Made by a program: the position numbers and the translations under genes. From Ylistrum balloti (lineage: Eukaryota): DNA of 64,000 nt. Below the pieces are notes generated by a model. The model did not search any database. It was not told where the DNA came from and worked only from the letters and a program-made list of their open reading frames with translations. Positions 14,207 through 53,849 of the stretch are shown piece after piece; within the stretch, counting starts at the first letter, position 1; the number at the start of each line of letters is the position of its first letter. The DNA lies in the NCBI RefSeq assembly GCF_031769215.1, contig NW_026782827.1, positions 1-64,000 on the forward strand, in the 5' to 3' direction.

Positions 14207-17200
14207 ATGACATTGGCAATAACGTTGTGTATGACGTCATTGTGTATGACGTCGTTATGGAATGTTATTCAGGCAGTAAAAATACAGACCTACAACGTCG
14301 CCCTCCTCACCAATACAGCCAAATACAAACAAAGGAGACCAAACGTAATCCGCGCACTGGCATCCGGAGATTATGACGTCATGTGCCTTCAAGAGGTGAC
14401 TATCAATGATTCGGAGCTGTTGAATGTCTTCAAATTTTACATTCTTACAAACTCATTTGTAAAAGGAACGTAGGATTTGCAGTATGAAAGTAAATCATAA
14501 TGCAAGTTATTTGCCTGAGAATGTTAAAATCATGCGATGCCTTATTGTTATCTTTGAGATAAAACTATTAATGTATAATAACTTCTGATGGGATAAATCA
14601 ACGATAGAGGGAACTGAACAAAATGCGGAAATTTATAAACGTGATTTAGGCATGCTTTATTTTTTAACAGGAATGATGTTTTCTTTAAACGTTTGCTTTC
14701 CAGATGTGGTTCGGAGATGATGTTGACATGCTGAAAGAAAAGCTAGACAAAGATGTTTCAATTTACACACCGCCTTTGTACCAGGAGAAGATGTTTTGGG
14801 GATTATTAAACGCTCCCCCGTGCCACAACGCACCACTGACAGTAGCCTGCATAGCTTTAAGATGTGCCTCCCTCGCAAATGACTTTGGGGCCCTAACAAA
14901 CTGTTCAATAGACTGTGGGTTATTGACTGAGAGTCAGGGATGTATTGCCTGTCTCACCGCTTCCGGTTTGAGTGCATTGCGCTGTTTTAATTACGTGAGA
15001 CATGAGACAATAAATATTCCAGGTGTTGTCCTTCTAAGTAAGAGGAGAGTGAATTCAGCCAAAACGATTTTCTTTGAACCAAATGTAAAACAGATAACTA
15101 AAAGGGGCTATATAGAAGCTGAGGTAAGTTTTTTTCTCGATTCATTTCCCTCATTATCTTTTATTCGAATGACGTCACTCTGTAAAACATCGACTTTATG
15201 AAAAGAAAAATCGTATTTTCCAATAACTGAGATTGGTTAAATGTTGAAGAACAAATGGGAAAAACTGTAACCTTCAACAAGGATATCCAATAAGGTGGGA
15301 ATAATGAGGTCGCTGGTAACACGTGATGCCAATTATTTCCTAGTGATTAGATTGTCACGTTCACAGTTAGTTGACTACTTGGATCACGTTGTGGAAATTT
15401 CATGCTAATATTAAGTTTAATAGGACTCACTTCAGCGCAGTTGTTACTTAAATACCAGTTTGTAGATTCTGTCCAGTATAATGATATCTCAGAGACGAGA
15501 ACTGAATGTTTACCAGTAAACCGTTTGCTGTCTCGTTATAATACTTCTCTACTTGTTTTTTATGGATTAAGAATTCCAATTGTCATATAATGACACATTA
15601 ATTTAGTTGCCATGCTACAATAAGAGAGACAAATTGAACAGAAATCAGCATTAAGTTTGATTTTGATTTAAACATTTTATTGAACAATTTCAATGGAATT
15701 GGGCACAAGTTTTCCAACTTATATCAAGTCTTGTCCCTATAAAGTGTGACAAATTACACAATAACAAGACAAAACGACATGTTTAAATACAAAATTACAC
15801 GGAGAGAGAAAGATATACTATTTGTTTTAAGTGTAAATCAGTCTCTCTTGAACCGGACAACAATAGTATTAGTTACACCGTACACTTTTCAATGCCTTCC
15901 AACTATTCTAAAGTTCGTCACATCCCGTGCGTTGTCCAACTTTCTCCTGTCGTCCTGGTCTTTCTCAATACTAGTGGGCCTGAGTGAGGAGAGACATTTA
16001 ACTTTTTATTTTAGGGAGAGTGAGAGAGAAGGAGAGAGAGATATGACAATCTGTTAGAGTTAAGAATATATTGCTGAGTGAATTGACAATATTTTTACAT
16101 TATCTTCATTAGAGAGGTTATCAGTACCATGTAGTACTAACTACATTAAGTATTTACGAAATGTAAGGAAAAACAAATTAAATGAAAACACACAGACACA
16201 ATTTATCACAATCCCCTTCTGTCTGTCTGTGTCTGTCAAATGAGCGCTGACATACCTATAAAGTAAAAGTCAGTGCTCAATATATTTCCAATATCTTGGT
16301 TGGGTTTTATCTAGTTACTATATTAATATTCTCTTCTACATCCCCCTAGAAACTACATAAAGAGTTCACGTGCTGCTTGATTTGCATTCTTTAATATACA
16401 TTTTTTCTTTTGTTTTTCCCCATTGAATTTGAAAATACAAACACATGATAATGAATTATTGAATTATATATTATGTTTGCAGATTGACGGTGTAGGGACG
16501 GTCTTTTGCAGTCATTCTACTTCCAACGCTGAAACTGAATTCTACGAACGTATGTAGAAATTTGTCAGATTAACATTTCATTCATTCATTCGCTGACTAT
16601 CAAAAGATTTATAACACATGCAACAATTGCGTAATATGCAAGTGCTTAGATTTCAAGAGAAGTCAGTCGTGTCCTTTGACCCAATAACGTCGACAGTTGA
16701 CAACCACGTAATCGTTTTGAACCCCTGATATAACAATGTTATACTGTGATATTTTTGGGGTGCGTGGGATTGCTCTGGACCTCCCTTATGTTGTTCCTTG
16801 ATGTAGTCACTAGCTTCAACAAGGATACCTTGCCTCAATATGACGCAGACTGTTTACGGAGCCAAATCATATCAAACAAACATCATCGATTTGATCTAAC
16901 AAACAAGTAGGATAAAGTGGTTACATACTGTCTAGGTTGGCTCTATATGTTCCTGTCATAATTTTCTTTTAGCTTTTGTTGTTGCTGGTATATACTTTTG
17001 TTATGTTATTTCGATTCAATTCCAGCAAACCTTCGGGACGTTTACTCTAATATGGCGGAACAAAATCTCGCCGACTCTCGTAAACTAACGAAAGCAGCCC
17101 TCATGTCTGACAAACCTCTCATCATTGGGGATCTTAATACCAGTCCCGACATACCAGCCTACAACGTCACCGCAGACTTCAAAGGTAACTCGCAAATGCT

Positions 17201-18399
17201 AATATATCGGAACGGTAGGGGAAGGAAATAGTAGTTACGTATGAGTTTGGGAAAGATGTTTAGAGACGTATTCCGGCCTGAACCAATAATTGTCATATTT
17301 TGCAACTAATTTGATATCATTTAAAACGGAAATGCAGGGTTAAAAGCAGGTACACGACTTTAGAAGCTGCTATTTCTTTCATTGGAAAACATCAATATTC
17401 TTTAACTTCTGTTCTGAACGAAGTTGGGAGACGCCATGATGCTTTCTTGTGAAGGGACGCCAGGTGATATCAGGAACGCCGTTTATTTCCTTCTCATCTT
17501 AATTAGAAATCCTCAATATACAAGACATTGACGACAGCAGTTATGTCGTAACTGAAACTTATAACAGTACTGATCAAGATAATACCAAAGACACACAAGT
17601 AAATAACACATTTTCATACAAATTTAGAGTTAGATATAGAGTCAAGCAAAGAAATTAAACTCCATGGTACGCCTGTTTCTCCCTTCTAGAACACGTCAGT
17701 GATGCTAAGGGCCTAATTCAAGGTACAGATATAATGTTTGTTATCGTATGATAGAGTTCCGAACTCTTTCCAGGGGAGGAGGACATAACCTTTCAGTCAA
17801 TCTCTGTTATATGATGTTTACATGGAATCTGTAATTCTATTCCACAAACTGAAAAGATACAAAGAAAATATAAGCAAACAATTATGTAAACCGTTCCGCT
17901 ATTATTTTTTTTCTAGACTCCTACAATCATTTCTTGTCGGAGGGTTTCGTGTCGCCATACGTTACCATGGTGGGAAAATGTACTTTTTGTCGTCGAAATC
18001 CTCTTGTTAAAGACTGGAATTACAATAACGTACTAGATCACGTGATGGTACGAAATCACACCGTCCTCAGTGCCAAGGTTTGATATTCCTACGTAACTAT
18101 GAAGTTGAATTTATTTATTTATTGAATTATTTATCATTTCTCTACTTTATTTTTAGTCGACAGCATGATGTATCTCGTCTTTAAGCCTTTCTCCAAATGA
18201 GAGCCCAAATTTTGTAAACATGACAAAAGTCAATAACTATGACATAAGTCCGCTGTGATATCTGTAACTTTTATACGATTATGTATGCTGGCCCATTTTT
18301 ATATATTTTTTGTTTCAGCGATTTTATGACGCAAACATACCAAGTATGGACTTTCCGATGTCCGATCACTATGGAGTTGAAGTAGAAGTTGGAAACTGA
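14207..18399 (+). CDS. EEP gene A: secreted endonuclease/exonuclease/phosphatase-family protein with Cys-rich insert, 358 aa
   Basis: Exons 14207-14395, 14704-15123, 16483-16549, 17026-17184, 17917-18077, 18319-18399 (TGA). All introns are GT-AG with phases 0,0,1,1,0 and the frame is uninterrupted. Signal peptide MTLAITLCMTSLCMTSLWNVIQA; motifs TYN, DVMCLQE, GVVLLSK, CSH, GDLN, LDH, SDH. AATAAA at about 18932 is followed by a GT-rich tract. Confidence 0.93.
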
Positions 18400-19480: not shown

Positions 19481-20470
19481 GATTCTTGACATCCTCCAAA
19501 CATCAACATTGGTGAATATTTTAAGTTAATTACCTGTTGCACTTAAAACTACTGAGTATAATTTGTGTCCTCTTCAAGTTATAAATAACTTTCCATTAGA
19601 CGAGTTCAATAATCAGGCAAAAAGTTATGAACTTGTCCCCAGGAAAGACATCGCCATTGAACATACCTAATACATAATGATCTTTAAGTCATTGGTTTCT
19701 TTACCATGAAAATATTGAATACAAACAATAACTACCTTAGAGTTTGATCAAATTGTGAGCAAGACAAAAGCCTCGTCCTACAATTGTTGCTTATCCCTGT
19801 GATTCATTGGTTTAAATAAACGATTTCATTTCAAAACATTTTATTAATACAAGGTATTAATAGGATTAGACAGCAGGCTAGTGCCTATATAAGTCTTCTC
19901 CTGGGACAACACAGGTGGTCAATTACAGTTACACTGATCAGATTCAAACACACATACATACTCCCTCTCTTTCACACTCACAAACCTACATATTTACATG
20001 TACAATAAACGATTGGTATGTGTTTTAATTTTTCACATGCTATTCTCTAAATGGAGTGCTGCAAAAATAAGATACATATGTCTATAATGATTGTGGGCTG
20101 TTATGAATTATGAGATAGAATTTATAACATAGGAGATATTTAAACATGAAACACTAGTAAAACTGCAATTCGTAGCGCACAACTATAAGAATGGACACGT
20201 GACACGATAGACAGATTCACATACATGTTTTAAAAAATATCAATGTTTAAATATTCTTTTCCATTATCTAATTAAAACAGTTTTCATCATTTCCTACAAT
20301 TCTAGACATTCTCCACACATCAACATTGGTGAATATTTTAAGCTAATTATTTGTTGCACTTCAAACTACTGAATATATATAATATGTGTCCTCTTTAGGC
20401 TATGCATAACTGTCCATTAGACGAGTTCAATAATCAGGCGGAAAGTTGTAAACATGTCCACGGGGAATAT
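19481..20470. repeat. About 170-bp diverged direct repeat (19481-19655 and 20301-20470)
   Basis: Both copies contain CATCAACATTGGTGAATATTTTAAG...TTGCACTT...TCCATTAGACGAGTTCAATAATCAGGC. Confidence 0.85.
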
Positions 20471-21264
20471 TCACGGTACACGGTACAGGTATTAGAAATG
20501 TGTATTTCAGAAAGATTTCCTGTTGGGAAGTTAAAGAAGTCCATGGATTACATGTAGAGGAACATTTACCTATTTTTGTTTCCTTAAGGAGCGGAAGGTG
20601 AAGTATTTTCCTTGAAAGGAAGACAATGATGTAGTGTCCGGTAAGGTACATGTACACATGTTTTAGATGCTACTTCATGTGTTTAGTAGGAACTCTAATA
20701 AATAGAATTACTAACTTGTCCTACTTGTAAATGATGTACTGTATGATTGTTTGTTATATATGTTAAATGATACTTGTTTTGTCGGTATAAATTGTTTCAT
20801 CAATATAGCAGGGGTATATTATTAAGTAAAGACTGTGTCAGGAAAATTATACTTATACATAAATCTGATAAAAACAAGCTTTTAAGTAGAATTATGTTAA
20901 AGTCAAAAGGCAGCTGCAAACATATACTTGATGTATAAGACTACGTGATAACACATTAAGTGTTAATACTTTGTGATATTTTGACTTATCCATTGTAAGA
21001 TGAAAAATACACCAGTTGTATAAGGTGGTTTTATAAGATGGTCTGCGAGGTAGAACTGATTCATAATTAAGTAGAGGAATATTTTACGGTAGATGTTTCT
21101 CATCTCCAGCTGTTGATATAGGTCAACGAGATATAACTTGTATATGTAAATCTCCAAGTTCATTTGATCAGTTATATAGTGGTGATATTATCCAAATAAT
21201 AATAATAATAATAAAAATAACTATATCTAATATAAAACCACCAAAATCGTTTAACAAAAGATAA

Positions 21265-21920
21265 ATAATAACAACTGTTTTTTACCTATATATAATGTGG
21301 CAAACATAATAACAACTGTTTTTTTACCTATATATAATGTGGCAAACATAATAACAACAACTGTTTTTTACCTATATATAATGTGGCAAACATAATAACA
21401 ACAACTGTTTTTTACCTATATATAATGTGGCAAACATAATAACAACAACTGTTTTTTACCTATATATAATGTGGCAAACATAATAACAACAACTGTTTTT
21501 TACCTATATATAATGTGGCAAACATAATAACAACAACTGTTTTTTACCTATATATAATGTGGCAAACATAATAACAACAACTGTTTTTTACCTATATATA
21601 ATGTGGCAAACATAATAACAACAACTGTTTTTTACCTATATATAATGTGGCAAACATAATCACAACAACTGTTTTTTACCTATATATAATGTGGCAAACA
21701 TAATAACAACAACAACTGTTTTTTACCTACCTATATATAATGTGGCAAACATAATAACAACAACTATTTTTTACCTATATATAATGTGGCAAACATAATA
21801 ACAACAACTGTTTTTTACCTACATATAATGTGGCAAACATAATAACAACTTTTTTTACCTAAATATAATGTGGCAAACATAATAACAACTGTTTTTTAGC
21901 TATAGATAATGTGGCAACCA
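21265..21920. repeat. 44-bp AT-rich minisatellite, about 15 copies
   Basis: Unit GTGGCAAACATAATAACAACAACTGTTTTTTACCTATATATAAT; period 44. Confidence 0.97.
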
Positions 21921-22217
21921 TAACAGAAGAACTCGTGTACAAGTACATGTATACGTTAACGTTTGAGGACAAAATTTAACAGATTAACATATGATAAATA
22001 TCAAAAAGTGTTATGTTAATGAAAATGGAATTATTATGTTATGCATGAATTAAAATTAAAACAACTACAATAAAAAAAAAAAAAAACCCACAAAAAGCAA
22101 AAACCAAAACATAAACAAAAAAATGTAGAAATATCTAGAGCATTTATTTTTGTGTTTACAAGATGAAAATAGTTAAAATATTTTATTTTTATGTGTTGCA
22201 GAATTTCCACCATAACC

Positions 22218-25200
22218 ATGATGCAGCCGTTTTGTATGACATTACTGTGTATGGTGTCGCTTTGGTGCGTGGTCCAAGCGATCAAAATTCAGACTTACAA
22301 CGTTGGCTTCATCAGCTTTATCGACAACTATGAAGAACGAAAAGAAAACGCCATCCGGGCACTAAGATCTGGAGATTATGACGTCATGTGTCTTCAAGAG
22401 GTGGGTATTAACAACATGGGTTGTATATAAACTAAATGATATTGATCACGCTTTACGCACTGAGTGATCAAAGGAGGGAAGTCTTGAAAGGAATACACTT
22501 AGAACGTGATCTTTTGTTCCGGAAGAGGAAACTTTGGACCATCCGCCCTTTTGCTAATAGCATGAAATTAAAGGTACACAAAAGGTATATGCTTAAGTTT
22601 TATGAAGGGTTCATTTACATATTCACTTAGGCGAGCATAACGCTAGGTGAAAATATGTTTTGTGTGCCAATCCCTGTCTCTCATACTTGGATTTTTATCT
22701 ATGGTTCGGGTATTCTTCTGAAAACGTAATTGTACTTGTATTATCGACCTTGATTCTTTCTCCGGTTTGATCACATTGCTTAATGAAGTATTACTTCTTT
22801 AAGTCTCCAGACCTCTATTGCCGACCATTCCTGTATAAGTGATCACATTTGATTTTCTACCGACACTTTAAAACACCCTCAGGATTCTTGACGTTCTATA
22901 AGTTACATACCTGTACGATAGCAAATCAAGCGCAACAAGGTATATATGTACATATACATGAACGCGATGTTTCGCCGATATGTATTATCATACATACCCC
23001 TACATGGTATAAGAGATTGAGTCTGAAAATTGGTCATTTTGCTGAACTTCTGGCTCTAAACAAGTTTCAAATACCCCGTAGGAAATGGAAACAAATATAA
23101 GATGATACTTTTCACTAAACAAGAATACTTTTTGCAATTTATTGGATTGCTACAAAATCTGATTTGGCGTTAATCTCACATTATATTTCATTTTTGGTTG
23201 CGCATATGACGCCATATGTTGCCACAGTTGTTCTAGATGTTTTACTGGTACGAACAGATTTGATGTAAGAAGACGGATTTTATCCAAGCTGGATAAAGAT
23301 TTGTACATCACTAGACGATGCAATTAAAAAAAAACGTACATCAACCTAGTTATAGTAATTGGCGTATATAAATAACATATTTCATTTCTTGATCAGGTGT
23401 CGGCCTTTTTAAAGAAATGGTCGATGAAAGAACAAATGTGATTTTTTAAATTCAATTATTCTTCAGATGTGGTACGGAGATGATATTGACAGGCTTAAAA
23501 AGAAACTGGGAAAGAGCATTACAGTTTACACACCACCTTTGTACCAGGAAAGGATGTTTGGGGGGTTCCTGAAAGCTCCCCCCTGTCACAACGCACCAAT
23601 AACAGCAGCATGTATAGCTCTAAAATGTGCAGACCTGGCGAACAATTATGCAGCGCTTGCAAATTGTACTGTTGAGTGTGGACTTATGTCTGAAAGTCAA
23701 GGATGTATAACCTGTCTGTCGGTTTCCAGTTGGACTCCGTTACGTTGTTTTAACTACTGGAAAGGGGAATCGATAAATATACCAGGAGTTGTTCTCCTTA
23801 GCAAAAGGAAGGTGACCTCAGTAAAGACGGTCTTCTTTGAACCAAACGTGAAGCAGTTATCACGACGGGCGTATATAGAGGCCGAGGTAAGACCTTTTCA
23901 TGAATGATGTGAAATTAGCTAAAAAACAATTTTTTAAAATAAGAATTTAATGAAGGTATGGAAGAACATGTCGACTTGTTAACATTGTTAAATCAAACTC
24001 ATATTCAATAAAACGGGGGCAAACTATGATCAAAAGAACGATTAACACGAACATACTTGAAAGAGTACAAGATTAAGACCAAATGTTCTGCTTCACCGAG
24101 AAACGTATAAACAACGAAATCGCCAGGCATTGTAACGAATATAAAGCGTATCAATGTAATTCGTTATATAATCTGTCTTAATTGTGCAGTAAGGCTACAC
24201 TAAACTATCAATTAAAACGTCGTGTTGTGAGAACGCAACACTTTTGTCTTTGTATGATATAGCAGCTAGCGGACATCTGTGCATGGTCTAAAGGTAAGAA
24301 TGAATTCAAAACGTGACCATTAATGTTCAATTTGATGTAGTAGGAATCAAACACATGTTCCTGTTAAAGAAAAAGAAAACTTTTTGTTATGGGTATTTGA
24401 TTATTTATACAATGTAAGACTAAACTATGATTATAAAACCATGACGATTCTCCTCTTGTATAGTAAACAGAAAATGAATAGAAAGGAAAAAACGACCGCT
24501 GAGTTGGAAGAGAAATGTTTAGTAAATTATCAATGTTAAGGCAAAAGAATTGTAAGTAAATATTAAACAGATGACGAGCTCCGTAAAACCAATTTTGATA
24601 TGTAATACACCAACAGGAACCGCGATATTTTCTGTTAAAAACGACATTTTGAGTATATTTTAGGGGCTTGACAATCAAAAATAGATAACTAGTTTTTTTT
24701 TTTTTTGCATTTACAATAAAATTTGCCTTTAAAAAATGTCCTCTGTTCAATTTGGTCAAATCATTTGACTTTATAATGTTTGATATAGATGTGACAGATA
24801 TTTTCATGAAGGAAACTGAAACAGATGATAAAAGAAATTCTGTCCGATTCACAACATTTTCATTTTCTTTAAGAATTAATGTTTGAATCTGTCCGTCCCT
24901 AGTGAAGTTCCTATCGAAAGCTTTCTGACATAGTCTTGTAAAACACAAAGTCTTATTGATGATACCTATATGTATCTTTGATTCAGATTGAAGATGTGGG
25001 TACCGTCTTCTGCAGCCACTCTACGTCCAACGCTAATACGGAATACTACGAACGTATGTAGAATATCCATAATTATATCTTATTCATTTATGAATTCCTC
25101 CGCCCGTCCGTCCGTTCGTTCGTTCCTTCGTTCCTTCGTTCGTTCTCACATGCTTTACATTATAATGCTTGCCTGCACAGGGTAATACATCAATGTGGTT

Positions 25201-25653
25201 TACCATGTTTGTGACCCCCGGTAAAATACTTTCATACATCGATACATGGAAAAGAGACTACCTTATCGACGAAGGAGGAATCAAATTATAACTAGTTATC
25301 GTCGACGGAGAAGTCTTATCATAACTAGCTATCGACGACGGAGAAGTCTTATCATAACTAGTTATCGTCGACGGAGAAGTCTTATCATAACTAGTTATCG
25401 ACGACGGAGAAATCTTATTAAAGCTAGTCATAACTGGAATTCTTATAAAGCTAGTCATAACTGGAATTCTTATAAAGCTAGTCATAACTGGAATTCTTAT
25501 ATAGCTGTAGGTAAATGAATAAATCAATTCACAAAGATTTGAAAAAAAACTTGAATTAAAAATGTTGACAGTCATTGTTAAATTTTGCAAAAAGTTATTC
25601 ATTTCCACAACATGATTTATTGTTTAATCTCTACCTCAAATTCGGTTTAATTC

Positions 25654-25688
<35 letters not shown>

Positions 25689-26475
25689 TTAGGCTTTTCT
25701 GATTAAATCAAGCACGAATTATTATTGACCGTCGATTGGTTTCCCTATATGAGTGGATACACAGCGTGAGGTTAGACTTGAAATGTATCGCATGGTCACA
25801 CGGAATGGCTTAAATCTATTTCGATATGTCTTTCTATGATGCATATAGATTTTTAAAATCAAACACACTAGTTGGCTGTGGAAACAGTCTCCTTACTTCG
25901 GCCAACATTATTTTAATGATGTTCAGAAAATTTGTAAATTACTCAAATGTTTGCATATTTCATTGAGAGTTTGTAAATATGGGACAAAGGAGCCTCTTTA
26001 ATCATTTATCCCTTAAGTTAAAGTAATGTCATCACACGTATTCTGGGGATACATTTCACATCTGCATCAAACCAAGTCACAGATAAAAAATGTGAACTAT
26101 TAAAAGTTAATACGTGAGTTAATTAAATTATTCAATATTGTGTCTAGTTAGTTATACGCCAGATTTTTAATCATAAGTTAAATACTAGAATGAGAAAGCT
26201 TAATTTATTACTGACATATATCGACCAATTGGCAATTATGTATTGATCAGTAGCCGGAGGCATACTACACATATATCCATGTATCATTTCATTTCCTGAT
26301 TATTTAAGTAATCACCTGAGCCTAGGCAGTTCGGAAGGTCAGTGGTACTTATCTTGTGGAAAACTACCTAATCTTCGATCAGTCCTATGTATAAGTATGT
26401 AACAGCTACTCAAGTATTACACAATCTTTGTTATCCCATATCATTTTTAGTATAAACAGACCTATCTTGGTCTGC

Positions 26476-26518
<43 letters not shown>

Positions 26519-28129: not shown

Positions 28130-28184
28130 CCACGAAAATCATACACAAATATATCACAAAACACATGAGAGTGAACTTTTTTCT

Positions 28185-28540
28185 CATACATATACATGTA
28201 TATCTGTCTCTGTAACACCAGTCTGATCTATATATAACATATACATGTATATCTGTCTCTGTAACACCAGTCTGATCTATATATAACACCATATACATGT
28301 ATATCTGTCTCTGTAATACCAGTCTGATCAATATATAACACCATATACATGTATATCTGTCTCTGTAACACCAGTCTGATCAATATATAACACCATATAC
28401 ATGTATATCTGTCTCTGTAACACCAGTCTGATCTATATATAACATATACATGTATATCTGTCTCTGTAACACCAGTCTGATCTATATATAACATACACAT
28501 GTATATCTGTCTTTGTAACACCAGTCTGATCAATATATAA
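28185..28540. repeat. 44-47-bp minisatellite just downstream of the gene B stop (about 8 copies)
   Basis: ATATACATGTATATCTGTCTCTGTAACACCAGTCTGATC(T/A)ATATATAAC(ACC) units. Confidence 0.95.
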
Positions 28541-31009: not shown

Positions 31010-31477
31010 NNNNNNNNNNNNNNNNNNNNNNNNNNNNNNNNNNNNNNNNNNNNNNNNNNNNNNNNNNNNNNNNNNNNNNNNNNNNNNNNNNNNNNNNNNN
31101 NNNNNNNNNNNNNNNNNNNNNNNNNNNNNNNNNNNNNNNNNNNNNNNNNNNNNNNNNNNNNNNNNNNNNNNNNNNNNNNNNNNNNNNNNNNNNNNNNNNN
31201 NNNNNNNNNNNNNNNNNNNNNNNNNNNNNNNNNNNNNNNNNNNNNNNNNNNNNNNNNNNNNNNNNNNNNNNNNNNNNNNNNNNNNNNNNNNNNNNNNNNN
31301 NNNNNNNNNNNNNNNNNNNNNNNNNNNNNNNNNNNNNNNNNNNNNNNNNNNNNNNNNNNNNNNNNNNNNNNNNNNNNNNNNNNNNNNNNNNNNNNNNNNN
31401 NNNNNNNNNNNNNNNNNNNNNNNNNNNNNNNNNNNNNNNNNNNNNNNNNNNNNNNNNNNNNNNNNNNNNNNNNNNNN
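31010..31477. other. Assembly gap (468 N)
   Basis: Run of n. Confidence 1.
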
Positions 31478-35690: not shown

Positions 35691-35746
35691 TGGCTTTACC
35701 ATTTGTCGAGCATAAATCTTTTTGTTTTGTTACCAGATTTCACAGG

Positions 35747-41700: not shown

Positions 41701-44223
41701 CGTTAGTCTGATACCACGGCGTTTCTTTGTTACTTTTACGTTTATCTGATACAACGGCGTTTGTTACTTTTCCGTTAGTCTGATACCACGGCGTTTGTTA
41801 CTTTTACGTTAGTCCGATACCATGGCGTTTGTTTGTAAAATTTCCGTTAGTCCGATACCATGGCGTTTGTTTGTAAAATTTCCGTTAGTCTGTGACCACG
41901 TTGTTTGTTACTTTTCCGTTAGTCTGTGACCACGATGTTTGTTACTTTTCCGTTATCTGTGACCACGTTGTTTGTTACTTTTCCGTTAGTCTGATACCAC
42001 GGCGTTTCTTTGTTACTTTTCCGTTTATCTGATACAACGGCGTTTGTTACTTTTCCGTTAGTCTGATACCACGGCGTTTCTTTGTTACTTTTCCGTTAGT
42101 CTGATACCACGGCGTTTCTTTGTTACTTTTACGTTTATCTGATACCACGGCGTTTGTTACTTTTCCGTTAGTCTGATACCACGGCGTTTGTTACTTTTCC
42201 GTTAGTCTGATACCACGGCGTTTGTTACTTTTCCGTTAGTCTGATGCCACGGCGTTTGTTACTTTTCCGTTAGTCCGATACCATGGCGTTTGTTACTTTT
42301 CCGTTAGTCCGATACCATGGCGTTTGTTACTTTTCCGTTAGTCTGATACCACGGCGTTTGTTACTTTTCCGTTAGTCTGATACCACGGCGTTTGTTACTT
42401 TTCCGTTAGTCTGATACCACGGCGTTTGTTACTTTTCCATTAGTCCGATACCATGGCGTTTGTTACTTTTCCGTTAGTCCGATACCATGGCGTTTGTTAC
42501 TTTTCCGTTAGTCGGATACCACGGCGTTTGTTACTTTTCCGTTAGTCGGATACCACGGCGTTTGTTACTTTTCCGTTAGTCTGATACCACGGCGTTTCTT
42601 TGTTACTTTTACGTTTGTCTGATACCACGGCGTTTGTTACTTTTCTGTTAGTCTGATACCACGGCGTTTGTTACTTTTCCGTCAGTCCGATACCATGGCG
42701 TTTGTTACTTTTCCGTCAGTCCGATACCATGGCGTTTGTTTGTAAAATTTCCGTTAGTCTGTGACCATGTCGTTTGTTCGTTACTTTTCCATTAGTCTGT
42801 TACCATGCTATCGGTCTGTGACCATGCCATCAGTCTGTTCCATCAAGATGCTGCTTGTCTGTTGCTTTACCATGTCATAAGTCTGTAGTTATGATGTTGG
42901 TTCGTTACCATGCGCTAGCCTGTTACACTATCAATATCACTGTCAATACGTTAACCTGTTAATATGATGCTAATTCGTTACCATGCCATTGTTCCGTTAC
43001 CATCACGGCAGTGTTACCACGACGTTTATCTTTTACCATGACGTGCGTTTTGATAGCATGATGTTAGTCTGTAACCATGACATTAGTACGTAACTATGAC
43101 ATTAGTCGCTTATCATGACGTTAACCGTAACCATGATGTTAGTTCGTAACTATGACGTTAGCCCGTTACCATAACGTTAACCGTAATCATGACGTTAGTT
43201 TTTTACCATAACGTTAGTCCCGCTACCTTGACGTTAGTCCGTAACTATGACGTCATTAATATTGATATTAATCGATTATTATATCAAACAGTTGCCATAG
43301 TATCAAGTAACTGTACTGACACTGGTCTGTCCAAGAGAGGAAGGTCTTGCTGCTCCTAGCCACGTAGTGTCCACTGTATATTTCAGTACGATAAAACTAT
43401 AAGAACGTCCGTCACTGCCCCATGTTGCGAGGACGTAAAATTTCAGACATCTAACACGTCTTCTGTTTCCTTCTTATACGTTGTCTGTAACTATTCCTTT
43501 ATACCTCCTTAAAATCGAAAATGAAAACAATGCGAAAGTCAGTATTCCTTGATCTCAAAATATCAAATCAACACGGCAAATTTTGCTGTGATAAAGATGT
43601 TATTTTGCCCGCAGATAAGGCATCTGACAACTGTTTTTTCCGCAAACATTGTATTTCCTGCATGCAGAAAGAAACATGCGCGCTCGATAATGAAGGAAAT
43701 TCTACCTAAATACATTTGAAACTCGTTGTCTCGAAGTCGCTAGAGTCGAACTTCCGTTTGAGTAGAAATAATTTTCAAGTCCCGATTTTTTCCCTTCTAT
43801 ATTTTGTAATTTAAGTTGAAGACTTGAATGTTGACCGAGTCGAAATTTCGGTTGATTCGAAGTGATTTTTGAGTCAATTCAATTGTAAAGCAAGGGAAAA
43901 GTAATTCGTTGTCTCGAAATTATTTTTTGTCAAAACATCGGCACGTCTTCTTACGAAATCTGTTAACACATACACAGTAAAAAGTCACCTGTTCGTAACA
44001 CATGGCTAATTACGGCGTATCGGTCCATCCTACACCCAACACTTGGTCTCTGGCGAGTAATTGCCAGTTAAATGATCTAGTTAAAGGTTGGCTTCTTAGT
44101 GTTACTTCTTGTAGCAATGACTTACCTGTATTATCAAATAAAATAATACTAACCAATTACATTGTCTCATCATTAAGGGCACGATTCTTTCTGATTAGGA
44201 TTGGATACCGGGTTACCTCATCG

Positions 44224-44256
<33 letters not shown>

Positions 44257-44416: not shown

Positions 44417-44448
<32 letters not shown>

Positions 44449-45278
44449 TCGTTGAAGACGCTTTCCCTCCAGATAAGCTGGACTAATCCTCCTGGGACCT
44501 TTACAAGTGTCTTGCTTGTAAATCTTTCTTTCATACTTTTTTGCCGTAGTTTTATAGAATTTTGAATTTGAAGAAGCTGTTTTTTTCCAAGAAATCATTT
44601 TTGTTTTTCTTTATAGTTGTCGATGCTCCTAATATCCACAAATTTATCTCTTTTTGGCCTCATCAAAAACCTGGTTTAGACATATTTATAATAATTCATG
44701 TGAATGTTTTAACTTTTTTAAAGATAAGCTTTCAATGCAACTTCCTTGACATTTGTGGTCCAATGCTTGAAAATACTTGATAAAAAATTCAACCCAAGAC
44801 TTTATCGTAATATTCACAATCAGTTTTCCCCTTCGGACCCTGGTTTTGTCGAATTTGAGTATAAAGTAAGATTCTGTTGCATGTCGGTAATACGTGTTTA
44901 AAAATAGCATGTATATTTGTATAACGTTATGTATCGACAATAGCAGACATTTTCACAATACCAATCTATAACTAGTTCACGATATCTTTATATTGGTTAA
45001 GGCATTGTATATAACTCTCTGTCGCGTGTGTTGAAACTTGAGATTAATATACTTTTAAACGAATTTGAAAACAAAAAGTACTGCATATCATAAATTTGAG
45101 CCTGATCCTAACAGTTCCAACATGTCTGGATATACGAGTACATTAAAAACAATGCCGACAGAATGTTGTCACATGTTACTTCCTACTTCCGTTTCAGAGA
45201 TTCTATGACCAGAACACTCCGGGCCAGGATATCCCGATGTCGGATCACTATGGAGTGGAGGTCGAAATTGAAAACTGA
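35747..45278 (+). CDS. EEP gene C: secreted EEP-family protein with Cys-rich insert, 359 aa
   Basis: Exons 35747-35935, 37116-37538, 38904-38970, 39285-39443, 40355-40515, 45198-45278 (RFYDQNTPGQDIPMSDHYGVEVEIEN*). All introns GT-AG, same phases as A and B. The last intron is expanded to 4.7 kb by repeats. Confidence 0.92.
40648..42800. repeat. 34-38-bp minisatellite, about 60 copies, in gene C intron 5; degenerate related short repeats continue to about 43260
   Basis: GTTAGTCTGATACCACGGCGTTTGTTACTTTTCC and variants. Confidence 0.97.
43505..43710 (+). mobile_element. Penelope-like retroelement RT N-terminal fragment (degenerate)
   Basis: Translates LKSKMKTMRKSVFLD...VILPADKASDNCF...LDNEGNST. 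This resembles the VVVPADKASNN...GNPTY segment I recall from invertebrate Penelope-like elements and is homologous to 49640-49810. Confidence 0.6.
43711..43887. mobile_element. Tc1/mariner-pogo-type MITE (TA...TA)
   Basis: Starts TACATTTGAAACTCGTTGTCTCGAAGTCG and ends GAGTCAATTCAATTGTA (imperfect TIR), with internal TCGA subrepeats. Confidence 0.55.
44227..44438. repeat. (TA)n and (CT)n microsatellites
   Basis: Direct reading at about 44227-44254 and 44394-44438. Confidence 0.9.
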
Positions 45279-46299
45279 ATATATTTCTGTTTAGTTTTGA
45301 TATTGCATCAACACCAGAAATTTCATTTAATGATTCTAAATCGTGATTGGTTGCAATATACAAAGCTGCTTCATTTTTAAAAAAATGGCTATTTGGTTCC
45401 GGTGTTTTCGCAAAAGTAGTGGTCATCAAATGTAACCTTTAAGCGCATAACCTTAAGAGGAACCATTTAGATTTAATGAGCTGTTTGTCTTCCCTTTGTT
45501 CTGGTTTGACGTAAATATTTCCAGCATTCGAGATGTTGTGTGGGGTCAGCAGCAACGGTAATTTTGGAGGGGACAATGGACCCTTAAAATCTGAAATCGG
45601 TCCCCTCCCCTTTTAATTTGCCATTTACATAGAGCGGCTCGCCTGATTTTTGACATTGATTGAAGTTGTTGAAAACGGTTCATTGCGTCAAAGATATTTC
45701 CGTGACGCATATCCATGTCAAGACGTGATGATATAATTTAAACCATGGCCCCTTATGAGATATTGTTAGATGTTCTAAGGAGAGTACCGGAGTTAGGATC
45801 TGATATTCAATCATATTAGATAATAATCACATGGGTACAGATAGAACATACATATCATTTTATACATATTAGAAATTCACATAAGCATTCATTGTTAGTC
45901 AATATTACCTCTGAAACGGTTTCCATTAATTCAGATGTTTGCTACAGGAGAGGGGGAATAGTTTTAAGAATTGTGCACGAAAATGTTAGATTGTCATTAT
46001 GCTAAAAAGGTATATGTATCAGAAAGCATGTTATGGTTTTCTTTGTGAAAACTTTTTAGATTTCTATCATAATTAGATGAACTTTTGCTCGTGCTAGCCT
46101 TCCGCCGACATAATCAATATTCGTAGTCTAATTTTATTCCAATATTAAGACGTTTACTATCAAAGCGAAATCCCATTGGGATCGTGGCACCTACCATACT
46201 TAAATGTATCTCGTGTAGTCTTCAAAAGTTATTAAAATTATCAAGTGATAATAAAACAGTGAAATTCCCGTTATTCCGGGCCATATCCGCGAATCAAGA

Positions 46300-46795
46300 T
46301 CCATGCAGCTTCCTGTGACGGCGGACCACGAGTTCACTTCTGTAACAGCGGTTCACGACCCATGCAGCTTCCTGTGACGGCGGACCACGAGTTCACTTCT
46401 TTAACAGCTGATCACGACCCATGCAGCTTCCTGTGACGGCGGACCACGAGTTCAATACTTCTGTAACAGCGGATCACTACCCATGCAGCTTCCTGTGACG
46501 GCGGACCACGAGTTCACTTCTGTAACAGCGGATCACGACCCATGCAGCTTCCTGTGACGGCGGATCACGAGTTCACTTCTGTAACAGCGGATCACGACCC
46601 ATGCAGCTTCCTGTGACGGTGGACCTCCTCGTAATTTTCTGTGACATTGGACCACGTCGTAACTTCCTGTGACGACGGACCACGACCCATGCAGCTTCCT
46701 GTGACGACGGACCTCCTCGTAATTTTCTGTGACATTGGACCACGTCGTAACTTCTTGTGACGACGGACCACGACCCATGCAGCTTCCTGTGACGC
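46300..46795. repeat. 59-bp minisatellite with internal subrepeats between the convergent 3' ends of genes C and D
   Basis: CCATGC at 46301 and 46360; unit GACCCATGCAGCTTCCTGTGACGGCGGACCACGAGTTCACTTCTGTAACAGCGGATCAC. Confidence 0.93.
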
Positions 46796-47281
46796 GGACA
46801 CCGACCAAATCTGACTTAACGGTACACTACTTAGTTTACCGTGATTGCTGGTCACATGACAATCCCAGTTCCTTTAGTTTTGCGATATTGCTCAGTCATC
46901 ACATATTTATGTAAACCACTGCACACAATATTGATATCAAACAAAACTGTTAACATACCGACAAATAAACAGAGACGAACATCACATCGAACTTCCTTAG
47001 AAAATATTGTATTAAAAAAAAACAAGCACCATCAACGGTCATTAAATATATAGGAAAATTTAATTTCAACCCTATCAGTACATATAGGTATATGAATAGA
47101 TGAGAATGCAAAAAAACAAAATGATTCAAGGGTAGATATAAGATATATTCAAAATGTACCAGAATATCACGTGCAGTGTAAAGTTACATGTATATAGATA
47201 TAATGAATAGCTGTACTTCATTCCATGTTGGTGAAAAAGTCATGATAACAACCAGTCTTGTCCAAATATAACCAGCCTCGT

Positions 47282-50200
47282 TCACAGATAACCTGAGGCA
47301 ACCTCAACCTCAATTCCATAGTGATCCGACATTGGAAAATTTAGATTAGGAATGTCTTCAACGTATAGCCGCTGAAACAAACAAAACAAACTGTGTATAT
47401 TGGAGTTAATATCATATTCTGTTCCATAGAGATGTCACTTAAGGAATTGCATCATAGTTCAGGACTTCATGTCTTGTTAATTTAGTGATGTCATAGTTCA
47501 GGACTGACGTCATGGTAGCCTATCGATGTCATAGCTCAGAACTGACGTCATGGTAGCCTATCGATGTCATAGCTCAGAACTGACGTCATGGCAATACACT
47601 TATTAGACTGAAACAAACAAAACAAAACAAAAAAAATGAAAAAAAAACCCATAAAATTCTATTATATAGAAACAATACCTTTGCACTGAGGACTGCATGA
47701 TCTCGTACAAACACGTGATCTAACACGTGACTATGATTAGATCCATGTGTAAGAGGATTCTGAAGACAGTAAGTACATTTTCCCACCATAGTGACGTACG
47801 GCGACACGAAGCCCTCGGACAGGAAATGGTTGTAGGCATCTACAAAGGAATGCGTAATTTATACCATATAACTAAGACGGTTTGTGTAGTTCATAGTAGT
47901 TTGTAAAATAATCTTAGTAGTAGATTAGTTTAAAATTTTAAAATACGAGAATTGAAAATTTCTTTAGAAAATAAAAAAATAATTTCGCACGAATTCCTTT
48001 AGATTGTATGAAACACGTACGTCTCGAGTCTCTGGAGAGCTAATAAGAAACATTTTCACTAACGGTGACGTAACCTATTTGTAATGACCAGTTTCATGGT
48101 CGTATTACTTTTCTCCGCTTTAAGTAAGTTTGTCGGTAATTTGAGGATGTTGATCAAGTCGTTACAGAAAGTAACATTCTCAATCCAGGGACCTACTTCA
48201 GTTAGTAATATCGCAACTGAATAAGATGAAATGCCACATGGTATTGTCTCCTACCTCTACTGGATATAATACACAGATTCCAGTCTACATATGAAAGAAA
48301 CATCTCGATGTCTGTCCACGATGTCCGATTTTTATCGATCTACTTTAGTGAACAAACACCTTTAATATTTATAGATATACATAAAGAATTTCAGGTATAT
48401 TTAGTAGGAATCGATAAAACAACAATTTAGATAATCCACGCAAAGCTTTTTTCATATGCCTCGACCTACATCTTGGCCTGAAACTATCGACAACTAGACC
48501 AGAAAGCAGGCGGAGCTTCTACATCATCAATTGTTGAAATTAGCGTTTTGATTGGCTAAGAACACGTGAGGGACCGTTTCGAACAAAATTGTGACAATAG
48601 GAGTTTAAAATTCAATCACCTTTAGACTGGAGTCTTTTGAGAAATGAATGACAATTTTTACAATAATAGATGTAGTTGAAAATCACACAAGAACAAAATT
48701 ATTTCTTCCAGGGGAACACAAACCACTACGGGAAGGCAGTGTGGAACCTTCACCTGGTGGTAGGTAGGCGCGGCGCTACGGCCCTTCATTAACGTTATAT
48801 CACACGACTTTCTAAATCAACACAAGTGTATACATACATTTACAGTATATCTAGTTGGTAGCGGCAATTTTGGAAACTCCACATTCCGTCTTAGGCAGAA
48901 AAAATGTAATGAGCGTATCTAAAGTAACGTTTTAATTTTTTTAAGCTGGATCTAAATATTTTCCCTTAAAACAATTAAATAATAAACTGTTACCAGATAG
49001 CTGATATGAAGCCATTGCGCTTAACTAAATACTGACGTCAGCAAGGATATGACCTGAGGATATCCATGCAACACCAGGGAATGATGCTCTTTCATATATA
49101 CACTGAACAGGTGGGTGGTGAAAGTTAAGTGTTGCAAGGCAGAGCCTTGGGGATGACGCTCGTCCTGGAAGATGCGTCACTGTTACAACCCCAGAAATGG
49201 TCAATAAAGTTCATAATATTGTTTATATGACTGACTGGCGATATATGGCCAGTACAGTTAGGATTTCACAGGAAAGAGACTATTCCATTCTTACGGCAGA
49301 TCTTGCAATGAGAAACTCTCAGCCCGTTGGGTACCAAGACTTTTGACAGTTGATCAGAAGCACACCAGGCGGACTAATCTGAACCTTTTAGAGGCATATC
49401 CATCATTTCATTCCAGAGGCCAAACAACCCTCTAGACAATGGAAACACCAAAGAAGTCGTGAACTGACTATGGATTCTTGAGTAGTTTAGGAATCCAATA
49501 TAAACGGAGGAGGTCCATATCCTTATCATTAATAGGCTATCTAAATTATTGTAATATCGAAGCATACTTAGCTAGTATTTCTTCGTTGGAAAGATTGCAT
49601 AATGTATATGAGAGGTTTCTTTCCTGATCAAGTAAGCATAGTTCTTTTTGTAATGTAATGAAGTCTGCAGACAAGAATCAAGTTATTGGACGCCTTATCT
49701 ACAAGCACAATAACAAACCTCTCTGATGAAGTTTGAAGTGTGTATTTAACATCAGGATCGAGGAACGCTGACCTATATTTTGTATTCATTTTAGATTTCA
49801 AGCTGCAAATTCTTATGAGACTTTGAATGGATTTAGATGTATATTTGTATGTTTGGACTGTCAGATCGATGTCTAGCAGACGAAATTGACAACCTTGGTA
49901 ATCTTGAAAGTTCTTGGGAGGGGGCAAAAATCTCATGTTTGGCAGTTAATTTGTTCTGTTGCAATTTGATAGCTTTGTAATGTTACTTATTTTAATGAAG
50001 GACCTGACCATCGAATGTGTATTCCTACGCTTGGTCAGATGGGCGCTCGTAGTCTGATGTACTCCCATCTGGTTTACACAGAACTTAAACTATTTAGAAC
50101 ATCAAAAATATGAAACCATTCAAATACATATTGGATTCAAAAGCTTTTGTTTGAGAAACCGAACACCATCTCACCCTTGTTAATATTACGTCATTAAAAT

Positions 50201-53200
50201 TTTAACAGTGCTATATAAAGTACATTAAGGGTTTTACCCTCAAAGTCGGCGGTGACGTTGTGAACAGGAATACTTGGACTAGTATTAAGATCCCCCATGA
50301 TCAGTGGCTTATACGACAGGCGAGCGGCTTCCGTTAGTTTGCGAGAATCTGCGAGATTTTGCTCCTCCCAGCTCGAGTACACACCACGGAGGTTTGCTGA
50401 AACGAGACAATGGGAATAATGAAGTGTTCAACAGTACATGTACGTGCTTCGTGTTACAAAACCATTCAAAACTTTTCTCGGATCGGATATTAATTTAGAT
50501 TTTTCAGCAATACATATATTCAACAGTTGTACAAGTATAATTCCATTTGTCCCAGTCCAAGTTGTGTTGAACTATATGTAATAAGGATAAATACTTATCT
50601 CACATTTAATACCAATAGTAACGTAGTATAAGGTTTTATTCGGATAGCTTTATGTACACTGCCATATGTTCTACATATATAATACCTACGTTCATAGTAC
50701 TCGTCCCCAATATTAGAGGCTGTATGGCTGCAGATGACTGTCCCTACTCCTTCAATCTAGAATGAAGAAGTCATCAGTTTATGTTAAGCCCATTCATGCT
50801 GGAGAAATCCAAAATCAGACATGACGGCTGTATTAGGGAGAGCTCATAATGTCGTTCTATTGAATGCTCATTAATTTGTGTCTTGTCTCTATTTTGGCTC
50901 AACTGGAGACCAAGGGCAATCTACATATCAAATTGTATGAAAGTGTTTCAAAAGAAACAACCATAAAAAATCTTTCTTCGTCAAAATCTAAGATGGCCAC
51001 CTGTCAACCATTTTGTTTTTCTGATATGTCCCAAAATCTAAAGGGCCCAACCAAAGAACAAGAGGAACTTACGCATGACATTTGACAAAGTTCTGATAAA
51101 CATTTCTCAAGAAATATCACTCGATCCCAAAGTCAGACCTGTTGCACAACCGTTAAGAAGGATACCTTACAATTTGTGGGACAAACTGGAGAAAAAAAAT
51201 TGAGAAACTTCAAAGTTTGAACATTTATATATTTCAACATGAGATTTTCCAAGTGTCAGGTGTTGCTGTTGAATCAGGTGGAGGGAAGGTATATAAGCGA
51301 AATGTTACGCATTTAAAAAATTCATGCTCCTAATTCTCCAGCAAAAAGGCACAATCGGGATTCTAATCCAGAAGTAGGTGCTGATCTTGATCCTCCAACT
51401 GATACTTGTCAAGGTCAAAGTCAAGGTAAAACGCAAGGTCAGAGTTTAGGCCAAAGTGTTGAACCAAATGAAATGGGTCTGGAGCCGATAAATGCTGATG
51501 TTGGTCGTCCACAGAGATCGAATCGGAAAATGCCCAGTAAATACAATGTTGTTGGTTAAATAACACTGTGAGATTATTGTGAATGTTCTATACATTGGAC
51601 AGTCTTATAGACCAGTATGTCGAAATACCTAATTTGTTTAAAATGTTTCATGTTTTACCAGAAGGAAGTTATGTTCAGATATTTTTAAGATGATTATTGA
51701 TTCTAGTCATGTGAATCAAACTTTATTTAATGTTTGATATACGTCACAATTCTAACCATGGGTGGATAAAAAAAAAATTAAGGTTGTTTTTCAATTCTAA
51801 ACGAGGGAGGAATGTAGTGTAGGAGAGCATATATTATAGCGAGTGAGTTGAAGGGCGGGAACTATCTGTGTTATCGGGGTGATGCTGACATGCGCGAGAG
51901 ATAATAAAAGAGACCGCATGGTATGGAGTCCTCCAATGATGTTGTGTTTTGTTGACGAGTTCAACTGTGGGGTGGATCCCGCACACGGGCCATATCAGTA
52001 TTACAGTCGCCTGTCAGCCATTTATTTTTTCAGTCCCGAAAAAACAACCACAATCGGGAACCAAGGGGAACAAGTATATGGAATTTGAGAAAGAAATAGC
52101 TATCACAAGAATTATTTACAGACGTAGGGCGAATTAAATCGCCAACAATCTGCTGGAGGTGGGCTTAAAACACCAGTCGTTGGCAAATTATATTTATGCA
52201 GATTTGTTTCCCCTTTTTAATGGCGTATTTGTCTTTGTAAAGTAAAAGTTTTCCGTCCTAAACAATGCGTCATAAAACCTGTATCAAAAAAAGATCGGTC
52301 ATAGTGCGGGATCAATTACAAAAATAAAAAAAAACACAAAAACATCGTACCTCCGCTTCGATGTATGCCCGTCGTAAAATTTGCTTCACATTTGGTTCAA
52401 AGAAAACCGATCTGACAGAATTCACTTTCTTTTTACTCAGAAGTACAACTCCGGGAACATTCATAGCCTCTCGCCTCGTGTAGTCAAAGCAGCGCAGCGC
52501 CCCCTTACCGGAAACGACGAGACAGGAAATACAAGCCTGACTTTCTGACATCATTCCACATCCTACAGAACAGTTTGTGAGAGCTGCCTTGCTGGTTATT
52601 GATGAACAATGTATAAATATACACGCAACAGTAAATGCTGCTTTGTGACACGGAGGAGCGTTAATCCAGTCCCAAAACATTGTCTCCTGGTACAAAGGTG
52701 CTGTGTGCACAGAAATACTACTGCCTAAAGTCTGACGTATCCTAGAAACATCACTTCCGTACCACACCTGAAATCGGACAATAGATAACAATAATGAATT
52801 TTAAATATCGGAGTATCAACTCTGTAATTTCAGTGAAGAGGCACTGTATGTAATGACCAAGATATCACACAACACGACAACTGTGACTTATGTCATTCTA
52901 TATGTCGTGTAATTTGGTGTAAATAAGGTTGGGATTTTTTATGTGCTTCGAATTGTATTCACATTAGGGTAACGTGCACCACAGCTTTGATGATGATAAT
53001 AATGATAATTGGTCGTCATTGACGTCACGTCAAAAAAATAGTTCAAAAATGATTTATTGGATGTTTTTATTTATCATTTGAAAACATGCTACATCGCGCA
53101 TTTAAATACGGCATAAATTATGACGAGATGCTTTAAAATTGATAAATGCACACGTTGTGGTTGGTAAGCTTCAACTATAGATGCAACAAGTGTTTTTAAA

Positions 53201-53849
53201 ATACTAAGCGAGAAATATCTGGTCTGTTGCATCTGAACGACAATGCAAATACCAGGGGGAATTCGTTGAAATTTCTGAAAGGTCATTTCAAGAAAGACTT
53301 ACAGACGTATAATTTCACCTTTCGAGTAATTGATACATGGAACCGTCTGGCGGAACACGCGATAAGATCGTCAAATACTTATCGATTAGAAAACAGGCTT
53401 GACAAATTATGGAAAAACCATCCAATGAAATATAATTTCAATATAGAGTATGGACCTGTCACTGGAAGGATCGTGGACTAGATATAATTACTTGTAATCA
53501 GAACTGCCTATAGAGGACCAGTATGGTCCTACAGCCGGATACAACATATGTAAACATAAGTAAACATAAGTAAATAAGTAAATCTACGAATATCATTTTT
53601 GTTTCGAGACTAAAATGCAAACCCTTATGATATATTGTGTATTGTTTATGTAATACGCACTTCCTGTAGACACATGACGTCATAGTCCTGAGACTGTAAT
53701 GCCTGTATTACGTTCGGTTTCCGGTCTTCGTAGTGGGCTATTAGATTGAGGAGGGCAACATTGTAGGAACGGATTTTGACTGTCTGAACCACGCCCCATA
53801 ATGACGTCATACAGAGTGAAGCCAGACACACCAGTTGTACCAACGCCAT
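47282..53849 (-). CDS. EEP gene D: secreted EEP-family protein with Cys-rich insert, 360 aa (inverted, convergent with gene C)
   Basis: Exons 53849-53661, 52767-52351, 50756-50690, 50396-50238, 47839-47679, 47371-47282 (RLYVEDIPNLNFPMSDHYGIEVEVASGYL*). GT-AG introns, phases 0,0,1,1,0. Signal peptide MALVQLVCLASLCMTSLWGVVQT; SYN, CLQE, CSH, GDLN, LDH, SDH intact. Confidence 0.92.
47480..47592. repeat. 38-bp repeat, 3 copies, in gene D intron 5
   Basis: GATGTCATAGCTCAGAACTGACGTCATGGTAGCCTATC. Confidence 0.85.
49640..49810 (-). mobile_element. Penelope-like retroelement RT N-terminal fragment (degenerate)
   Basis: Minus-strand frame RICSLKSKMNTKYRSAFLDPDVK...FVIVLVDKASNNLILVCRLHYI; same family as 43505-43710. 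Confidence 0.65.
51110..52005 (+). mobile_element. Internally deleted Ty3/Gypsy LTR retrotransposon with PPT and 3' LTR, antisense in gene D intron 2
   Basis: 51115-51225 encodes SLDPKVRPVAQPLRRIPYNLWDKLEKK (pre-RT segment of Gypsy pol). 51250-51560 encodes VAVESGGGKVYKRNVTHLK...RPQRSNRKMPSKY (integrase tail). The purine tract AAACGAGGGAGGAA directly precedes TGTAGT at 51813. The LTR ends ATTACA at 52005 and contains AATAAA. Confidence 0.8.
53190..53585 (+). mobile_element. 5'-truncated CR1-clade LINE 3' end, antisense in gene D intron 1
   Basis: ORF 53227-53481 TRGNSLKFLKGHFKKDLQTYNFTFRVIDTWNRL...ENRLDKLW is a typical CR1 ORF2 C-terminus. It has a 3' UTR hairpin AGGACC-agtat-GGTCCT and a TAAGTAAA-type tail. 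Confidence 0.85.

Follow-up and report, generated by a model that had tools for sequence, protein, structure and literature searches.

A cluster of four tandem genes in the scallop Ylistrum balloti for putative secreted EEP phosphodiesterases with a cysteine-rich insert

What do four closely related scallop genes encode when every database entry for them reads only 'uncharacterized protein'? The window examined here is a 64,000-nucleotide stretch of Ylistrum balloti DNA (RefSeq assembly GCF_031769215.1, contig NW_026782827.1, positions 1 to 64,000 of the forward strand). The genes lie between positions 14207 and 53849, with A, B and C on the plus strand and D on the minus strand. An earlier reading of the letters alone, which we call the sequence-only reading, had proposed that they are intact, that they belong to the endonuclease/exonuclease/phosphatase (EEP) superfamily and that their subfamily is apparently uncharacterised. 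We believe the best explanation of the sequence data is that A to D are functional tandem paralogues whose nearest characterised relatives are the neutral sphingomyelinases C. On this reading they encode secreted, disulfide-stabilised Mg2+-dependent phosphodiesterases of an uncharacterised EEP subfamily, and their substrate would be the head group of a membrane phospholipid. Taken as a whole, we consider that explanation somewhat likelier to be right than wrong.

The first step is to ask whether these are real genes. We built the models from six-frame translations anchored on conserved peptides, read every exon boundary and then spliced the exons. Each gene has six coding exons, all introns are GT-AG with canonical AG/GT at each junction, the exons start in phases 0, 0, 0, 1, 1, 0 in A, B, C and D alike, and exon lengths are near-identical among the genes. 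The frames are open with no internal stop and encode 358 residues in A, 356 in B, 359 in C and 360 in D. The outer limits of the cluster are exact, 14207 being the ATG of A and 53849 the ATG of D. An AG acceptor with a polypyrimidine tract stands 5' of each ATG, at 10 nt in A, C and D and at 16 nt in B. By BLAST the four spliced proteins are 100% identical, over their full length, to four Y. balloti RefSeq entries (A is LOC132563179, B is LOC132563165, C is LOC132563178 and D is LOC132563167), so the junctions of our models agree with the NCBI gene models. The cluster genes are thus already annotated in RefSeq, without a function. The sequence-only reading was right about the six intact exons with common phases, as the rebuilt models and the RefSeq identity both attest, and about the acceptor 10-16 nt before the start codon, which can be read in all four genes and is used by RefSeq in B. 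RefSeq gives B 30 extra N-terminal residues from an in-frame ATG in an upstream exon (20402-20475, plus strand, with a GT donor) joined to that acceptor. This exon is probably 5' untranslated region, since with 30 residues in front of it the signal peptide would no longer be terminal and the three paralogues all begin at the ATG further downstream; the extension itself is probably an annotation artefact. Pairwise dN/dS among the four genes is 0.14-0.21 at dS 0.9-1.5, and below 0.25 in the core and the insert separately, which argues that they are old duplicates under purifying selection.

The proteins are 62-75% identical in pairwise comparisons. Fourteen cysteine columns are invariant among them; twelve belong to the mature chain and the other two to the predicted signal peptide. 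The sole 19-residue hydrophobic window above 1.6 is the N-terminus in all four; it is followed by VQA, SSA or VQT and then (I/V)K, with small residues at -3 and -1. Since this is the only hydrophobic window and the chain ends straight after the last strand, the proteins have no C-terminal anchor. The motifs YN, QE, SH, GDLN, LDH and SDH are present in every protein. In the numbering of protein A the catalytic set is N30, E63 (a metal ligand), H214, D261, N263, D319, D348 and H349, with D348-H349 as the general base; these residues occur in 4 of 4 scallop proteins and in at least 66 of the 67 family members described below. The sequence-only reading had anticipated the main features, and its twelve mature cysteines, complete motif set, predicted signal peptide (a single N-terminal window by hydropathy) and lack of a C-terminal anchor we find in all four. 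Its claim that the glycosylation sequons are shared survives in part. NCS/NCT and NVT/NIT stand at the same positions in A to D, but the NHT position is confined to A, B and C, and D has no sequon there and an NHS 13 residues earlier. A fourth sequon, NTS in A, C and D, uses the catalytic Asn of GDLN.

The EEP fold that the sequence-only reading had assigned to these proteins can be taken as certain on the evidence of models. PF03372 (Exo_endo_phos) is precomputed for the RefSeq entries identical to A, B, C and D, and ten relatives are above its threshold, orthologues scoring 28-50 bits against a cut-off of 24.5. The AF2 model of protein A (pLDDT 94.5, pTM 0.91) is an EEP four-layer alpha/beta sandwich. 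VIA-align matches it to human nSMase1 at Z 26.0 (245 residues aligned, root-mean-square deviation 2.8), to TDP2 at Z 25.7 and to the Bacillus cereus sphingomyelinase (SMase) at Z 23.9; among other EEP proteins the Bacteroides phosphatases come at about Z 24 and nocturnin/CNOT6L at about Z 22. Foldseek, VIA-align and the ESM Atlas confirm the fold and do not discriminate function, a language-model search returned generic EEP clusters only, and single exons searched against Pfam and the PDB gave only sub-threshold or chance rows, the Pfam rows being collinear. It is also fair to say that the proteins do not nest within a characterised family, as had been claimed. No NCBIfam model reached its cut-off (weak xth and ExeM/NucH rows, best 25.9 bits against 99), and the proteins are just 12-20% identical to EEP enzymes of solved structure. 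Nor is there a recognisable named orthologue, the public homologues that we found all being called 'uncharacterized', 'hypothetical' or by generic endonuclease/exonuclease/phosphatase names.

Where within the superfamily do they belong? The fold is certain, but structure searches tie many EEP families, so the placement near the sphingomyelinases rests on a sequence profile. We aligned 67 animal and bacterial members and used the alignment as a profile (hmmsearch) against all PDB sequences. The top match is B. cereus sphingomyelinase C (E 7.4e-16), followed by S. aureus beta-toxin (1.4e-11), Streptomyces SMase C (3.4e-11), Listeria SmcL (2.3e-10), an uncharacterised Leptotrichia EEP protein (7.7e-10) and human SMPD2 (1.5e-6). 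The next non-SMase family of known function is exonuclease III at 8e-6, and SMPD3 comes at 1.1e-5. TDP2 has E 0.16-0.25 with no stretch passing alone, and DNase I has a non-significant E 0.26-0.29 (13.4 bits). The alignment to SMase pairs CTHLTA with GTHLQA, GDLN with GDMN and the C-terminal SDHYGVEV with SDHYPVEA (family first, SMase second). Judged by this profile, the subfamily sits with sphingomyelinase C and not with DNase I.

What sets the subfamily apart is an insert between two core strands, at residues ~101-168 of protein A, that comprises three helices, carries 8 of the 12 mature cysteines and measures ~75-90 residues in the family. Folded alone from a 54-sequence alignment it reaches pLDDT 80, which is moderately confident. 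It has no Foldseek match, and its best VIA hit among 48,161 chains is Z 3.6. We considered a saposin-like identity and set it aside, since the saposin-like rows have only Z 3.0-3.1, which is noise level and merely a lead. At least 90% of members keep the twelve cysteines and the catalytic residues, so the insert is ancestral to the family rather than added in animals by exon shuffling.

This raises the question of how old and how widespread the family is. When the four exon-2 translations were made into a profile and run against 1.84 billion representative proteins, only 35 matched at E <= 0.001, and a word search seeded with its best full-length match retrieved the scallop relatives. Orthologues of the cluster are present in Mizuhopecten yessoensis, Pecten maximus and Argopecten irradians. 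More distant animal members, at 27-38% identity, are found in the bivalves Crassostrea, Saccostrea, Mytilus, Ruditapes and Sinanodonta, the limpet Lottia, the brachiopod Lingula and the sponge Sycon. Y. balloti itself has two further distant paralogues, ~30% identical, at C256:645966-646382 (plus strand) and C677:9677-10102 (minus strand), the latter being RefSeq LOC132559681 (358 residues). Both keep the exact boundaries of exon 2, with AG before the codon that follows QE and GT after the xAE codon, so the intron-exon structure must be old. A further word search seeded with the sponge protein added no animal phyla, although it scored only the 8000 candidates with the most words in common and does not show absence.

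The family extends well beyond animals. In bacteria, with one genome scanned per species, 220 loci were confirmed. The best 80 of the 220 belong almost all to Bacteriovoracaceae, Bdellovibrionales, Oligoflexia, Myxococcota, Bradymonadales and Haliangium, with some in Halieaceae and Pseudomonadales. Even samples of 151 genomes each gave 43 carriers of the family among the Myxococcota and 6 among the Bdellovibrionota, almost all of them with one copy. The bacterial members begin with signal or lipoprotein peptides, and across the 67 animal and bacterial members the 12 cysteines and the catalytic residues are invariant or at least 90% conserved. Three bacterial loci share no neighbours, and their downstream genes are mutually unrelated. 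On sequence grounds, then, the subfamily with its cysteines and insert is not specific to scallops but includes other molluscs, Lingula, a sponge and many bacteria.

An unrooted maximum-likelihood tree, built from 27 animal and 68 bacterial sequences, puts the animals on one side of a branch (SH-aLRT 97), with the sponge outermost, then Lingula and then the molluscs. Because the tree is unrooted, a single ancient animal origin fits both vertical descent with many losses and one old transfer. Pecten, Argopecten and Mizuhopecten each have one orthologue that clusters with gene D, and the companions of A, B and C are Pecten LOC117337017 and one Argopecten protein. By this tree, two paralogue lines or more are older than the split of Ylistrum, Pecten, Argopecten and Mizuhopecten. 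The sequence-only reading had spoken of a lineage expansion, and this needs qualifying. There are four old paralogues in a cluster common to the Pectinidae, but the expansion is not private to Y. balloti.

If these proteins are enzymes, what would they do? We suggest that the signal peptide is cleaved and that they act outside the cell, where Mg2+ bound by E63, together with H349, would activate a water molecule to cut a phosphodiester. The substrate would most likely be the head-group phosphodiester of a membrane (sphingo)phospholipid, cleaved in the manner of a phospholipase C, and the cysteine-rich insert may take the place of the missing SMase hydrophobic hairpin as the element that binds substrate or membrane. 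We favour a membrane phospholipid head group because of the profile relation to SMase C, the predicted extracellular location and the helical insert, which would be locked by disulfides. That the hosts of the family are predatory bacteria on the one hand and suspension feeders or grazers among the invertebrates on the other suggests that microbial cells are digested or fended off, though it proves nothing.

Several points weigh against this reading. The structure searches by Foldseek and VIA-align give sphingomyelinases, TDP2, nucleases and phosphatases alike at Z 22-26. An exposed hydrophobic beta-hairpin is the membrane-binding element of B. cereus SMase and beta-toxin, and opposite the hairpin segment of 2ddr the family profile has nothing but a gap. 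The disulfide pairs, and an insert lying over the active site, are predictions, and we judged the signal peptide by eye and hydropathy. To our knowledge most bacterial prey lack sphingomyelin. Searching by gene identifiers and topic, we found no literature on any family member, and the substrate and activity proposed here are putative. We found no RNA run of Y. balloti; the sole public run with the locus is DNA, since its contigs cover the introns of gene B about 10x, without joints. Apart from this, the oyster member (the product of Crassostrea gigas LOC105322019) appears as an uninterrupted 396-residue open reading frame in ~1.2 kb contigs of two separate public runs. These look like spliced transcripts, which would be an indirect sign of expression and the only one.

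The nature of the lipid deserves a separate word. In mollusc membranes it is ceramide aminoethylphosphonate, rather than sphingomyelin, that is abundant (PMC7431532), and sphingophosphonolipids are also made by Bacteriovorax stolpii (PMC6148460); together these make a phosphonolipid-specific role attractive. For the bacteria the genomes give it no support. PEP mutase is found in 17 of 151 Myxococcota genomes (match of at least 294 bits, 13 of them over the 319.55-bit cut-off), and the family occurs in 3 of these 17, a lower rate than the 43 of 151 seen overall. A bolder version of our favoured reading would make the family a distinct class of extracellular lipid phosphodiesterases with a saposin-like lid for an insert, part of a 'microbe-eating' toolkit shared by predatory bacteria and by sponges, brachiopods and molluscs. 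Its arrival in animals would have been a single event, whether at a very early date or through an old transfer between domains, and its substrates would possibly be sphingophospholipids of non-mammalian type, such as ceramide phosphoethanolamine or phosphonate, or bacterial membrane lipids. We regard this version as quite unlikely.

Can the same data be explained by a different substrate? The proteins could be secreted nucleases, of the DNase I or ExeM/NucH kind, that digest extracellular or prey DNA or RNA in gut or mucus. Predatory bacteria and filter feeders digest whole cells, so the need is plausible, and the C-terminal SDHYGVEV resembles SDHYPVEV, a motif shared by DNase I and of a kind that the profile alignment also shows in bacterial SMase. 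By structure, TDP2, NExo and Mth212 match just as well as the sphingomyelinases do, and there are the weak NCBIfam rows to xth and ExeM/NucH. Those rows are far under their cut-offs (best 25.9 bits against 99), however, and the profile gives E 0.29 for DNase I and 0.16 for TDP2 against 7e-16 for SMase C, so we think nucleases rather unlikely. Phosphoesterases for some other extracellular substrate, such as glycan phosphates (compare the Bacteroides mannose-6-phosphatase Bt3783), lipopolysaccharide or teichoic-acid phosphodiesters, or inositol and other small phosphates, would fit the missing hairpin, and the unique insert could make a pocket for a non-lipid substrate. Their structural matches are equal as well (4c1r at Z 24.1; 3mpr, 3g6s and 3l1w at Z 24-25). 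Their profile matches, on the other hand, are much weaker than those of SMase C, or missing, and the three bacterial loci reveal no neighbourhood link to glycan or cell-wall pathways. This alternative we call unlikely.

The remaining possibility, that these are not functional animal genes at all but decaying copies, bacterial contamination or an assembly artefact, is suggested by the bacterial identity of the closest non-animal relatives and by the assembly gap within the cluster. It is almost certainly wrong. Each gene has five GT-AG introns, low GC, an open frame and dN/dS about 0.17; orthologous clusters stand in four other scallop genomes; two ~30%-identical paralogues elsewhere in the genome keep the boundaries of exon 2; and exons and introns alike are covered by a second, independent DNA run from Y. 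balloti. The gap is intergenic. The introns, selection, orthologues and independent run already contradict it. The reading we prefer remains that of secreted phosphodiesterases that probably act on membrane phospholipids.

The layout of the locus can now be given in full. Gene A, on the plus strand and identical to LOC132563179, begins with exon 1 at 14207-14395, which holds the ATG, the signal peptide and the YN and QE motifs. Exon 2 (14704-15123, phase 0-0) encodes core strands and the 8-cysteine helical insert, exon 3 (16483-16549) the CSH motif, exon 4 (17026-17184) GDLN, exon 5 (17917-18077) CTFC and LDH, and exon 6 (18319-18399) SDH and the stop codon. In the spliced model of gene B, also on the plus strand, the coding part of exon 1 is 22218-22400, with its acceptor at 22200-22201, and exons 2 to 6 follow at 23467-23886, 24987-25053, 27232-27390, 27624-27784 and 28049-28129, the last including the stop codon. 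The first intron of B contains a tandem array with a 44-nt unit (21264-21923), and another with a 52-nt unit (28188-28547) lies just 3' of its stop. Across gene B (22950-28149) the independent DNA run and the assembly disagree at ~1-1.5% of sites, among them 23763 in exon 2 and 27377 in exon 4, together with small intronic indels; this is consistent with high heterozygosity. Over 26631-27110, in intron 3 of B, the depth of the run is raised and a rearranged contig joint runs from 26993 to 26662, as expected for a repeat.

GC is low in the region, about 0.29-0.46, and there is one run of N, the assembly gap of 468 N at 31010-31477. Since it comes after the stop of B at 28129 and before the ATG of C at 35747, outside all coding exons, no coding frame depends on it. 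Between the gap and gene C is a 14-bp minisatellite of ~123 copies (32754-34474) with a strong purine/pyrimidine strand skew, which produces long artefactual open reading frames on the minus strand, and a tandem array with a 27-nt unit (35012-35522) stands directly 5' of the start of C. The spliced model of gene C, on the plus strand, has exons at 35747-35935, 37116-37538, 38904-38970, 39285-39443, 40355-40515 and 45198-45278, the last with the stop codon. Its intron 5, at 4.7 kb, far exceeds the 241 nt of A, the 264 nt of B and the 307 nt of D because of a 2.1 kb tandem array at 40668-42805 (~61 copies of a 34-nt, or 106-nt, unit). Gene D lies on the minus strand, and its model runs from exon 1 at 53661-53849 through exons 2 to 5 at 52351-52767, 50690-50756, 50238-50396 and 47679-47839 to exon 6 with the stop codon at 47282-47371. 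Minisatellites dominate the flanks of the cluster (1781-2059, 3749-4790, 9120-9978, 46289-46799, 54552-55106 and 57680-61044), and we saw no other convincing protein-coding gene in positions 1-14000 or 54000-64000 of the window.

Why should this family matter? It is a coherent, conserved and unstudied group of enzymes that joins a familiar catalytic core to an unprecedented insert, apparently rich in disulfides, and its hosts are economically important animals (scallops, oysters, clams and mussels) and predatory bacteria. Should the substrate prove to be a membrane lipid, no secreted enzyme of the SMase C type would have been described in molluscs before these, and they could be relevant to digestion, to innate defence and to the way predatory bacteria dismantle their prey. 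If they are ordinary nucleases instead, the result is a routine improvement of annotation. In either event the patchy distribution in animals, combined with a single animal clade, makes a useful case for weighing ancient metazoan genes lost many times against an old transfer.

It remains to compare the family with systems that are already known. The closest by profile are the bacterial sphingomyelinases C (B. cereus 2ddr, S. aureus beta-toxin 3k55 and Listeria SmcL 1zwx), which have the same fold (Z ~23-24 over ~250 residues). Both groups are secreted, the scallop proteins by prediction, and both have the catalytic Asn, Glu, His, Asp-x-Asn, Asp and Asp-His and the motifs THL, GDxN and SDHY. 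Identity is only 14-18%, however. The family has 12 conserved cysteines and a helical insert of 75-90 residues where SMase has a loop of ~14, and it lacks the exposed hydrophobic beta-hairpin of SMase C and beta-toxin. Of the animal enzymes, SMPD2 (8j2f) is the top structural match at Z 26.0, and it and SMPD3 (5uvg) share the catalytic core. These two are intracellular membrane proteins, held by C-terminal transmembrane helices or N-terminal membrane anchors, whereas the scallop proteins have a predicted signal peptide and no anchor; at 16% identity they are not orthologues. DNase I is of the same superfamily, is a secreted glycoprotein and ends in a similar SDHY-VEV motif, yet the family profile does not match it significantly and it falls outside the best structural rows. 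The proteins of Myxococcota and Bdellovibrionota annotated as 'endonuclease/exonuclease/phosphatase family metal-dependent hydrolase' are members of the family itself. They have 24-31% full-length identity, the same 12 cysteines, the insert and a signal or lipoprotein peptide, and they differ from the scallop genes in being intron-less, in usually being single-copy and in having a slightly longer insert.

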